Below are positions 38,491-41,962 of a stretch of DNA of 64,000 bases, piece by piece (the first letter of the stretch is position 1; every line of letters begins with the position of its first letter). This stretch comes from Heteronotia binoei (Eukaryota): assembly GCF_032191835.1 (NCBI RefSeq), contig NC_083243.1, positions 143,220,001 through 143,284,000 on the forward strand, read 5' to 3'. A program made the position numbers and the translations under genes. The notes below the pieces were generated by a model. The model did not search any database and was not told where the DNA came from. It worked only from the letters and a program-made list of their open reading frames with translations.

Positions 38491-39267
38491 GCCAGATGGA
38501 GGACCAGGATCCTCTTTGAATGTAGCACTTGGCTACGTTTTTCTGAAGCAGCCAACAGGCTCACGGACTCCAGATCACTAGTGTTAGAAGTAACGGTTTT
38601 CTGTGCATGTAACGGTTTTCTGTTCACTGTTCCTGTATGTTTATCTATACGAACATAAATCAACCGAGCTGTATGAATGGGGCAGTTATGCCCACTTTGG
38701 GACCTAGATAATTCGATGTTAAAATGTGTTTTTTTTTCCCCAGGCAGTAAGAAAATGACTCCAAAGAGTACATCTAATCTAAGCCCTTGCTCCAAAATGG
38801 GTTTATAGCACGTGCATTCTGTACTGTTTTAAAGTGCTGTGCTCTTGTGTGCAAACCAGGTGGGCTTCTATTATGTTGATGTCTTCTCACTTCTCCATAT
38901 ATGGCTAGAATGTGAGTGCATCTCCCTTATATATTGGAAAGTGGAGTGATTTCAGATGCCAAATGGCATCAGCATAAGAACAATAGAGGATACACAGTAA
39001 GATATGGTGCAAAAGGAGAAATCCCTGTGTAGCACAAAAACTGCTCTTTTACATTCAAGTAAACATATTTTATCGGTGTTCATTAAAGCTACAGAAATCA
39101 TTAAGTAATCACAAAATTCACTTGTAAAGAAAGCCACTATGTAAGTGGTGATAAAGCATTCATACTATAGTCCTTAACCGATGTTTGGACATAAAGTGCA
39201 AAGTTTCCAAATGCAATCTTGCAAGGTAGTCCTCACAGTGCATCAGTCACCGGAGAGAAAAAGCCTC

Positions 39268-39318
39268 AGACGTATCGGAGACCGGTTTCGGCTTTACGCC
39301 TTTATCAATCACTCATCT
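39268..39318 (-). ncRNA. Putative minimal type I hammerhead ribozyme, U3-A8 variant (left arm)
   Basis: Minus strand: agatgagtga-TTGATAA-a-GGC gtaaa GCC-GAAA-CCGG-TC-tccgatacgtct. Core box, stem II, GAAA, palindromic stem III ACCGGT and a GUC triplet are all present. Confidence 0.55.
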
Positions 39319-39542
39319 TTTAGCACTTTACTGCTTGACGGCTTCTCCTAGAATATTTTTAAGTCAACAGGGACACCAGTACAGTTATTTACATTGGAAA
39401 ATTCTTGCCGAAGTTTATCCACTGGGATGCTTCCAGTGGATAAACTTAGGTGAAAATTTTCCAATGTAAATAATTGTACTGGTGTCTCCGTTGACTTAAA
39501 AATATTGTTCTAGGAGGTGCTGTCAAGCAGTAAAGTGCTAAA

Positions 39543-39593
39543 AGATGAGTGATTGATAAAGGCGTGAAGCCGAAACCAGTCTCCGATACGTCT
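39543..39593 (+). ncRNA. Putative minimal hammerhead, U3-A8 variant (right arm, stem III mutated)
   Basis: agatgagtga-TTGATAA-a-GGC gtgaa GCC-GAAA-CCAG-TC-tccgatacgtct. The stem III palindrome is ACCAGT rather than ACCGGT. Confidence 0.45.
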
Positions 39594-40046
39594 GAGGCTT
39601 TTCCTCTCCGGTGACTGACACACTGTGAGAACTACCTTGCAAGATTGCATTTGGAAACTTTGCACTTTATGTCCAAACATTGATTAAGGTCTATAGTATG
39701 AATGCTTTATCACTGCTTAAATAGTGGCTTTCTTTACAAGTGAATTTTGTGATTACTTAATGATTTCTGTACCTTTAATGAACACCGATAAAATGTGATG
39801 TTTATCTGAATGTAAAAGAGCAGTTTTTGTGCTACACAGGGATTTATCTTTTTGTTCCAAATGACATCAGCAGGCAAACAACAGTAGCAGGTGTGATTGG
39901 ATTAGGTGTGATATGCAGAGAGGTAGTAGGCTTGGACACACCTAATCCAATCACACCTGCTATTGTCGTTTGCCTGCTGCTGTCATTTGACACCTGAAAT
40001 CATTCAACTTTCCAGTATGTAGGACAGATGGGCTCACATTCTTGCT

Positions 40047-40086
40047 GTATCTGAAGAAATGAGCAGAGACTCATAAAAGCTCATAC
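40047..40086 (+). ncRNA. Decayed PLE minimal hammerhead
   Basis: gtat-CTGAAGA-a-atgag cagaga ctcat-AAAA-gctc-atac. Stems I and II pair, but catalytic G12 is mutated to A. Confidence 0.5.
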
Positions 40087-41367
40087 TCTTCCATTCGTTT
40101 TGTTAGTCTTTAAGGTGCTACTTTACTCTCTTTTTTCCCTTTTCCTGCTTTGGACAGACTAACAAAGCTTCATCCTACGCATAGCTACAACCTTCTCACC
40201 CAGTGGCCTTCAATAGTAACTCTGCTTAAGATAGCAATCTGTTTCAGCAAAAATAAATAGTATTGTGGTACATCAGAGAGAAGGTACAGATGTAGCTGAT
40301 GTGATTTTACCTAGAAATGAATGCTTACATGTGATCACAGGATCATTTCCCACAGATTAGTAGCATCTTACTAAAAAGGTACATTGTATGAGATTTCTAT
40401 CAGCTGAAATAAGAATTTTGCCTCAGGTAATAAGCTGTACACCCAGTGTTCAGTCACTGTTGAACCTCAGTTGTTCCAGGTAACTTTCAACTGTTGACAT
40501 GCATAGACAGCAATAAAGGTAAGATTTTGTCAGGTTATCAAAATAAATTTAAGAAATTATGCAAAGTGAGTGCCTACAATGAGCACTGCTACTATAAACA
40601 GCCTTCTACTGCAATTGTGAAATCCAGGAAGTGGTGCATTGTTGTATGGTTTATAAACTTAATCCTCAAAGATTCGTGGCTTTATTGACTTGGCAGTTAC
40701 AAAATGCAATTTTGCTGCAGAATCGTATCTGGAGTTCCTGAGATCAAATGCCATCGTCATTAGATAAAATTTAAGTAATGAAAACTCAAGAGTCTAGGTT
40801 TAGTTACAGTATAAATTACAGTGTATTCTGAATCACACATAACATTAAGAGGCATTTTCCATGTCCAAGTAGTGCTCTTCCATTCTAATCATCCACCATC
40901 AGGCCTTGCTGTGTACTGTTATTTTCTAGATGGCTTACCTTGAATGATAATGAAAATTCCCTTTCTGTTAAAGGATTTCAGCCTACAGGAGTTCTAAAAG
41001 ACAAATTGCTGTGAATTATAGTAATTGATGTTGCATGTTGCAGTTTTTATGTACATAATGGGGACAAAGGATTTGTGGGTGTGTTTTTAAAAACCCAGCA
41101 TATTTTCTCAGGTTAACTAAACTTGCCAGGTTGTTAAGGTTGCACTGCCATGGTGTACCTGTAGAATCAACTGTAATTTGAAATAGGGTATCTCACTATT
41201 AGGATGCAGATGTTAGTGTGTGGCTAGTTAGAGATTTTAAAATATGTGGGAGATAAGTGATCTGATGACTGTTTATACTAATGTGGTTTTAAAAATGTAT
41301 TTATTAGAAATTTCCCAACTGAACGAAGTTGCCTTTCTTCCTGAACGCTGAGCTGAAGAATTTTATC

Positions 41368-41510
41368 ATGGGCCAGCAACTTTCAAGCCAGACACACGCA
41401 GTTATTAATAAGCTACCAGAAAAAGTAGTCAAACATGTATCTCTCGTCCGAGAAAGTGGCTTCCTGACGTATGAGGAGTTTTTGGGCAGAGTTGCTGAAC
41501 TTAATGATGT
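41368..41510 (+). CDS. RNF141: RNF141 first coding exon
   Basis: Reads [48 protein letters not shown]; donor GT|GTAAGA; acceptor at 41306-41307. MGxxxS fits an N-myristoylation motif. Confidence 0.97.
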
Positions 41511-41962
41511 GTAAGATTTCTGTTTCTTTGCTACAAAAAGTGATACATTCTTTGATACATTAATGTTTCAGGTTGAGCAAAGTGCTGCTTGAACTTCTGC
41601 TGTTTGTTTAACCTGCGTACCCCTTGTTGAAGAATTAAGCACTCTGTTATAGAACCTCTGCAGGATCTATGCCTTAATATTAAACCCTATGCTTGATACA
41701 AACCCCTGTCAGCTCATTTACTTCACACACTTAAAGTTTATTCAGCCATTAATATTCATCTAGCAAATGTACATATTTATAGAATTTTGAAATATTAATG
41801 CTTGTAAAATTCCATCAGGGTATTTGTGGTAGTGTGGTCCAGTAGTATTTTAGAGACCAAAAGGTTTTTTGAGGTATAAGCTTTCAGGAGTCAAAGCTCC
41901 CTTCATCAGACCTTTGCTTGTCAAAGCTCCCTTTGTCAGTTCTTCTACAGAAGACCAACGTG

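Follow-up and report, generated by a model that had tools for sequence, protein, structure and literature searches.

Probable relics of a minimal hammerhead ribozyme with a U3-A8 core in head-to-head Penelope-like element tails near RNF141 of Heteronotia binoei

A 64,000-nucleotide stretch of the Heteronotia binoei genome (NCBI RefSeq assembly GCF_032191835.1, contig NC_083243.1, positions 143,220,001 to 143,284,000 of the forward strand; "the window" below is this whole stretch, and positions are counted from its first letter) contains, upstream of the first coding exon of the RNF141 gene, a giant palindrome in each arm of which lies a string resembling the core of a hammerhead ribozyme. Both partners of the tertiary pair between core positions 3 and 8 are changed in these strings, which raises three questions: what kind of sequence forms the palindrome, whether the changed core descends from a ribozyme kept by selection, and whether the gene is affected. 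We propose that the strings are relics of minimal hammerhead ribozymes (min-HHRs) situated in head-to-head tails of a Penelope-like element (PLE), and that the U3-A8 core was selected in the master elements, where the motif would have acted as a dimer. Catalysis is something that we infer, and we assign to this reading as a whole a probability of about 0.78.

Two motifs in a palindrome of element tails

On the plus strand the motif reads UUGAUAA-A-GGC-GUGAA-GCC-GAAA-CCAG-UC (U3 at 39553, A8 at 39558, C17 at 39581), and on the minus strand UUGAUAA-A-GGC-GUAAA-GCC-GAAA-CCGG-UC (U3 at 39308, A8 at 39303, C17 at 39280). Both copies were read from the sequence and recovered by a pattern search, which gave two matches in the 64-kb window and none in 100 shuffles; the core that an earlier note, made from the letters of this DNA, had placed in both arms of the palindrome is thus indeed there. 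Both copies hold U4, G5 and A6, A9, G12, A13 and A14, the A15.1-U16.1 pair and a base other than G at H17, and in both the canonical C-G pair between positions 3 and 8 is replaced by the isosteric pair U3-A8, as the same note had pointed out.

The plus-strand, sense copy (39543-39593; 71.8 bits with covariance model R1) comprises the 5' strand of helix I (39543-39552), the core from U3 to A9 (39553-39559), an unpaired A before helix II (39560), helix II GGC/GCC with the loop GUGAA (39561-39571), the segment from G12 to A15.1 (39572-39575), the broken palindrome CCAG (39576-39579), U16.1 and C17 (39580-39581) and the 3' strand of helix I (39582-39593), with the predicted cleavage site between 39581 and 39582. 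The minus-strand, antisense copy (39268-39318; 72.5 bits with the same model) has its unpaired A at 39301, helix II with the loop GUAAA at 39300-39290, GAAA at 39289-39286, an intact CCGG palindrome at 39285-39282, U16.1 and C17 at 39281-39280, and the predicted cleavage site between 39280 and 39279. Helix II is a G-C closed GGC/GCC stem in both copies, and the helix III palindrome is ACCGGU in the left arm and, by a single change, ACCAGU in the plus-strand copy, where the palindrome is lost. Helix I of the window copies is as weak as had been noted: 2 bp (GA/UC), an internal loop (AGU versus CGAUA) and then 5 bp (AGAUG/CGUCU).

The published min-HHRs of PLEs are of type I, with a short helix I and an unpaired base 5' of helix II; in place of helix III they have a palindrome through which two motifs work together as a dimer, and the motifs often occur pairwise on opposite strands at distances of 100-700 bp (PMC4209133). 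A natural U3-A8 core variant has already been reported for Schistosoma PLEs (Cervera & De la Peña 2014, PMC4209133). Since the extra A after A9, the lack of a real helix III and the U3 and A8 replacements are all documented in min-HHRs, none of them is a defect by the standards of the PLE class. Each arm would carry the minimal type I hammerhead of its lineage, in which U3-A8 has taken the place of the C3-G8 tertiary pair, a single unpaired A stands before a helix II of 3 bp, and helix III would be formed by the A15.1-U16.1 pair closing CCGG.

The palindrome itself is as large as had been described, with arms at 39002-39425 and 39433-39862 that are 92.7% identical and differ by 31 mismatches (23 of them transitions) and 7 gap columns. 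Judging from its genomic copies, the right arm (39430-39862, plus strand, sense to RNF141) is a copy of ~433 nt of a PLE 3' tail, namely of its pseudo-long terminal repeat (pLTR) part, with the 3' end pointing outward, and the left arm (39002-39429, minus strand, antisense to RNF141) is an inverted copy of the same tail. For the right-arm unit, a first look at the 2.63-Gb assembly gave 1331 candidates; more than 40 genomic copies were scored, at 87-93% identity. About half of 29 sampled loci contain a single arm, and 14 of the 29 contain an inverted partner arm; the partners stand head-to-head with both 3' ends outward, and their inner end is usually truncated at variable points. Opposite-strand pairs of the motif were found genome-wide in a covariance model search.

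A longer subfamily (L021, L022, L026 and L029) extends ~700 nt further upstream of this unit and includes an open reading frame (ORF), which in better-preserved relatives reads ..FPCG.CSVC..VYLLKC.CSKLYVGS.IRT.R.RI.EH...FSFLVLEK...E.YWIH.LKT..P.GLNQ.. and whose alignment retains the GIY-YIG-type positions Y..YVG, R, E and N. A feature search of the ESM Atlas placed this ORF domain beside GIY-YIG (PF01541) clusters (score 0.97, 45 of 100 hits), and a word-index protein search returned just two uninformative fragments. By its sequence, the C-terminal domain of the ORF is probably a GIY-YIG endonuclease; we refer to it as the endonuclease (EN)-like domain, and it has 6332 first-look candidates in the genome. 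Directly upstream of it, in two members of the same clade as the window lineage, Pfam detects the reverse transcriptase (RT) family RVT_1, above the cutoff of 29.6 bits in L069 (37.7 bits, E 2.3e-9) and below it in L071 (26.5 bits, E 6.4e-6). Known PLEs are organized in the same order, with RT, a GIY-YIG-type domain and then a hammerhead tail that occurs in inverted or tandem partial copies (PMC4209133, PMC6765202, PMC11167929), and this match of layout identifies the arms as 3' tails of a PLE in the usual head-to-head arrangement. A DNA transposon or a miniature inverted-repeat transposable element (MITE) was considered first and dropped, because the long copies run into RT and EN coding sequence. 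The palindrome would have arisen by head-to-head insertion of two copies of the PLE 3' tail beside copies of an older PLE-type repeat.

Conservation and covariation among related families

Tails of related families were gathered by homology of the EN domain (51-80% identical at the protein level to that of the window's lineage) and not by the motif, and most of the PLE families collected have a motif of this architecture ~350-500 nt beyond the stop of the ORF. The motif holds its homologous position also where the EN proteins share no more than 55-80% identity. With one representative per family, mean pairwise identity amounts to 0.82 and 0.87 in the two core blocks versus 0.4-0.5 in the flanks. 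An alignment (A2) of 57 distinct motif instances served as the basis of all invariance and pair counts. Invariant in it are U4, G5, A6, A9, the unpaired A, A13, A14 and U16.1, and A15.1 is nearly so; G12 is replaced by A only in scattered copies, the step from position 11.1 to G12 being a CpG. All four bases occur at N7, loop II differs among copies both in its sequence and in its length, and H17 is C, A or U, never G.

The paired positions vary together. Between positions 3 and 8 we found UA in 42 copies, CG in 8, UG in 1 and C.A in 6, so that the pairing noted in the window is kept as UA or CG in 50 of the 57. The first proximal pair of helix I is AU in 52 copies and GC in 3, the second GC in 46 and AU in 7, and the third pair of helix II is CG in 38, UA in 8 and UG in 6; helix II as a whole has 95.9% paired cells. 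The covariation score (0.233) exceeds those of all 500 of 500 shuffles and of every slid register. Elsewhere helix I has 8-10 contiguous base pairs or 3+5 bp, and its sequence is wholly different between families, as in GUCUACAA/UUGUGGAC (8 contiguous bp), GGA/UCC followed by AAGAA/UUCUU, or GG/CC followed by GCC/GGC.

As for the 3-8 pair, the window's own family has UUGAUAA in 28 of 33 arm copies, so that its consensus is not CUGAUGA and the variant core is not a private change of this locus. A pattern search in which any Y was allowed at position 3 and any R at position 8 gave 28 U-A, 6 C-G, 6 C.A and no U.G among the 40 matches listed, and its reversed control gave none; the genome-wide counts of the motif, by pattern (at least 40 scored) and by covariance model (at least 150 scored), are lower bounds and provide no unbiased tally of positions 3 and 8. 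The U3-A8 core recurs in several divergent PLE families that have sister families with C3-G8 and an otherwise identical motif, and two sister families differ by the double change alone (CUGAGGA-A-GGCGUGGCC-GAAA-CCGG-UC versus UUGAGAA-A-GGCGUGGCC-GAAA-CCGG-UC). The intermediates U.G and C.A occur only in scattered individual copies. Exchanges of the hammerhead 3-8 pair are known to be tolerated in vitro, in part from work cited in PMC3884650. In a maximum-likelihood tree of EN nucleotide sequences the U-A and C-G families are interleaved, with five changes by parsimony, and the approximately unbiased (AU) test rejects a single C-G clade (p 0.0006) for a group that was defined after the tree had been seen. 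Among independent contrasts there are three joint changes at positions 3 and 8, none in the opposite sense, and three with position 3 changed alone. Taken together, the island of core conservation and the covariation of helices I and II and of the 3-8 pair across families support the idea of the earlier note that selection had acted in the parent element.

Two further observations concern the same tails. The U3-A8 families A and B (L043, L052, L056, L058, L044, L055 and L077) combine a GUA cleavage triplet with a contiguous helix I of 8 bp. In addition, a second conserved block lies 22-51 nt upstream of the core across divergent PLE families (~39502-39531 on the plus strand of the window); it consists of AGGAGRAG followed by a hairpin GCA(N5-6)UGC, with mean pairwise identity of 0.60-0.64 versus 0.4-0.5 in the flanks.

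Dimer action, rival readings and the RNF141 gene

When two family copies are folded together, the predicted minimum free energy (MFE) structure contains helix II, an intermolecular ACCGGU/ACCGGU helix and helix I; the dimer is favored over two monomers by -30.3 versus -25.8 kcal/mol in the window's family and by -31.9 versus -28.0 kcal/mol in family A, in which helix I is contiguous. As predictions of an energy model, and not evidence of catalysis, these values are consistent with a dimer-dependent ribozyme. The window's family also offers an alternative pairing, of the helix II 5' strand and loop, AGGCGUG/A (e.g. 39560-39566, plus strand), with UACGUCU (39587-39593), the distal 3' strand of helix I, which pairs also with the distal 5' strand AGACG/AGAUG; this alternative dominates the MFE cofold of the left-arm copy and may be due to chance.

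By analogy with published work on the class, two RNAs of the source elements would pair through ACCGGU/ACCGGU and the resulting dimer would cleave after GUC, which would serve to process multimeric PLE transcripts. Selection on the motif would have acted in the master elements, and the copies at RNF141 would be neutral relics.

Several points weigh against this reading. The monomer of the window copies has an MFE of -11.1 kcal/mol versus -6.8 kcal/mol for the hammerhead-compatible fold, keeping helix II and distal helix I and pairing U3 and U4 in a shifted register, and helix I is weak in the window's family. In the two GUA families U3 can pair with A17, extending helix I in predicted folds, and such a pair could hinder activity, by analogy with the C3-G17 trap discussed for hammerheads (PMC3884650). 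The test on independent contrasts is not significant (3 versus 0, p 0.25), and tail exchange among families could look like recurrent switching at positions 3 and 8 and would raise the number of switches counted. The C3.A8 mismatch is present in 6 of the 57 distinct copies and, within the window's own family, in ~5 of 33, where it shows no subfamily clustering on a star-like, uninformative tree; these copies may reflect recurrent change, or a mismatched source copy may have been mobile. On the protein side, Pfam assigned no family to three EN-like ORFs, a profile search of the PDB gave no match for the EN-like ORF, and an AlphaFold2 model of the domain from a shallow alignment reached a predicted local distance difference test (pLDDT) score of 32 and was not used for a fold search. 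Of the parent PLE with RT and GIY-YIG that the earlier note had envisaged, RVT_1 upstream of a GIY-YIG-like ORF has been found, and the GIY-YIG identity is probable. Finally, published PLE min-HHRs cleave slowly or poorly even as dimers (PMC4209133), and in vitro an Anolis PLE did not require cleavage in order to insert, nor did any read end at the cleavage site (PMC11167929).

The last two findings, together with the C3.A8 copies, are also what speaks for the most serious rival, according to which the motif is conserved for a role other than cleavage (RT binding or initiation, or a promoter of the pLTR) and the U3-A8 lineages are descendants of a hammerhead that is catalytically dead; the AGGAGRAG and hairpin block moreover implies that the tail holds other functional elements. 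The pattern of constraint is, on the other hand, the one that a hammerhead predicts, with the bases of the catalytic core fixed and N7 and loop II free. Helices I and II covary, and from one sister family to another positions 3 and 8 switch jointly; one would not expect a site of protein binding, or a promoter, to preserve Watson-Crick complementarity at these two positions. We regard a non-cleavage role as quite unlikely, and prefer min-HHRs that were selected as ribozymes in the master elements.

Could the copies in the window nevertheless be active and regulate RNF141 by cleaving its pre-mRNA or an antisense transcript? Short peptide matches place the coding exons of RNF141 on the plus strand at 41368 (the ATG exon), 44084, 44933, 46342 and 49054, from which it follows that the CCAG copy is sense and the intact CCGG copy antisense to the gene, as had been stated earlier. 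The motif site lies ~1.5 kb upstream of the ATG exon, plausibly inside intron 1, and this position would suit a regulatory element, as would the antisense copy, which retains every core base and the CCGG palindrome. Against this, the CCGG to CCAG change of the sense copy, a transition at a CpG, puts two mismatches at the center of the dimer helix, and, whichever strand is transcribed, the RNA has only one actively oriented motif along with its complement. The 861-nt RNA of the palindrome is predicted to fold into a hairpin with 407 mirror pairs (MFE -674 kcal/mol), a structure that leaves no part of the motif unpaired. Divergence between the arms is 7.3%, looks neutral and is mostly due to transitions, and more than 1,000 equivalent copies (first-look candidates) are spread across the genome. 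The loss of the palindrome in the sense copy, the single sense motif per transcript and the read-through hairpin of ~860 nt all argue that the RNF141 copies are relics. Both appear to be old, decayed and neutral; nothing suggests an effect on RNF141, there is no reason to think that the gene is affected, and we hold its regulation by these copies to be highly improbable. Rfam microRNA families match 39364-39494 with E-values down to 3e-8, far below their gathering scores, and microRNA genes were rejected there, these being generic long-hairpin matches to the center of the palindrome.

As to the Rfam hammerhead models, they gave no match to the window motif at the gathering threshold or at E<=10, but as a control they also miss the canonical C3-G8 motifs of the sister families, which renders the negative result uninformative. 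The remaining idea, that of a chance hammerhead-like string in the terminal inverted repeats of a DNA transposon, foldback element or MITE, could appeal to the near-perfect 860-bp palindrome, to this Rfam result and to the need to permit three departures (U3, A8 and the extra A) from the standard core, yet it is already contradicted and hardly credible, given that single arms are commonest and partner arms truncated at variable inner points, that longer copies continue into sequence coding for RT and the EN-like domain, that the motif is an island of conservation common to families with poorly alignable flanks, that all three departures are documented in PLE min-HHRs (PMC4209133) and that Rfam misses the canonical sister motifs too.

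Neighboring repeats and known systems

The PLE tails are flanked by an older repeat, which we call X and which has 2101 first-look candidates in the genome. Its copy to the right (39858-40120) consists of a hairpin (arms 39858-39910 and 39937-39989) and a unit, a typical X copy being an inverted piece of ~53-70 nt plus a unit of ~184 nt. Other copies of X carry the canonical min-HHR CUGAAGA-A-GUGAG...CUCAU-GAAA-GC-UC, and in the window copy, on the plus strand from ~40048, G12 and the first base of helix II are both A. The neighboring CTGAAGA family, from which the earlier note had distinguished the variant lineage, is therefore indeed a separate PLE-type repeat. On the left, 38871-38990 (plus strand) is a partial copy of X, inverted relative to 39937-40067 and ~78% identical to the reverse complement of that segment; the pair 38871-38990 / 39937-40067 and the hairpin at 39858-39989 make up an outer, weaker level of a palindrome of 1.2 kb. 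The flanking direct repeats 38958-38990 and 39856-39891 are ~80% alike with indels, versus 92.7% for the arms, and are too diverged for a target-site duplication; they are better explained as two copies of X. Insertion of PLEs within or next to PLE copies already in place has been reported (PMC6765202).

A further min-HHR-like string, CUGAUGA-A-GGGAGC..CUCCU-GAAA-GC-UU, is found on the minus strand at 41871-41909, just downstream of the first coding exon of RNF141 and antisense to the gene, with a partial duplicate, CUGACAAAGGGAGCUUUGAC, ~25 nt upstream of it; its helix I looks poor, and Rfam gave no match. Two PLE-tail copies elsewhere in the genome have neighbors of their own. A 183-aa open frame (L021:985-1536, minus strand), which we take to be an RTE/BovB-like reverse transcriptase, adjoins one of them, BovB-type long interspersed nuclear elements (LINEs) being presumably present in this genome. 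A few hundred nt downstream of the other, Rfam gives a sub-threshold 5S rRNA match (L086:709-824, minus strand; 31.7 bits against a gathering score of 38, E 0.0015), which may represent a 5S-derived short interspersed nuclear element (SINE) or a pseudogene.

The class of PLE min-HHRs and its U3-A8 variant are already known, and the find is in this respect largely ordinary; the earlier note implied more novelty than is warranted, as U3-A8, the unpaired base and the opposite-strand pairs are all described by Cervera & De la Peña 2014 (PMC4209133). What is added here is that U3-A8 is dominant in a large vertebrate PLE clade, within which C-G and U-A families are interleaved; in the literature that we found, this core had been reported for fluke PLEs only (PMC4209133). 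The compensating double change between sister families supports, from natural variation, the C3-G8 tertiary pair known from crystal structures, and argues for selection on PLE hammerheads. For annotation it means that descriptors or Rfam models that fix C3 and G8, or require helix III, will miss such motifs, and that the large, plausibly intronic palindrome at this locus is an ordinary product of PLE insertion. More tentatively, and on balance doubtfully, the 3-8 pair of a single vertebrate PLE clade may have alternated several times between C-G and U-A, with U3-A8 forms that are active and altered in cleavage or ligation; if so, this genome would offer a natural mutational series for the role of the 3-8 pair, and the series could be used to probe what the ribozyme does for PLE replication.

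Three known systems can be compared. The hammerheads of newt satellite 2 and of avocado sunblotch viroid (ASBVd) resemble the present motif in an unstable helix III that is completed in a double-hammerhead dimer (Forster et al. 1988, in PMC4209133, PMC6765202), and viroid hammerheads likewise tolerate an extra unpaired base after A9, before helix II (De la Peña & Flores 2001, in PMC4209133). These newt and viroid hammerheads differ in that their 3-8 pair is the canonical C3-G8, their loops make tertiary contacts with each other and their helix III has 2 bp, and they reside in satellite or viroid RNAs, whereas the motif described here resides in a retrotransposon tail.

The Poseidon-type PLE PAc of Anolis carolinensis (PMC11167929) has the canonical C3-G8 pair instead of the U3-A8 found here, and its motif overlaps the start of the ORF and is cut 26 bp past the ATG; in H. 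binoei the motif follows the ORF stop at a distance of ~350-500 nt, and its surroundings showed no ORF start.

The closest counterpart is the min-HHR of the Cercyon-type PLE of Schistosoma mansoni (PMC4209133), which shares the type I topology, the location in the flanking repeat or tail of a PLE, the short and poorly defined helix I, a palindrome for dimers in place of a real helix III, the opposite-strand pairs 100-700 bp apart and the replacement of C3-G8 by U3-A8. The host is here a vertebrate and not a fluke, helix II has 3 bp compared with 7-8 bp in the fluke families (PMC4209133), and helix I of the window's family, with 2 bp, a loop and 5 bp, is of a different build. Unlike in the Schistosoma case, families with C3-G8 and families with U3-A8 are interleaved here in one PLE clade of a single genome.

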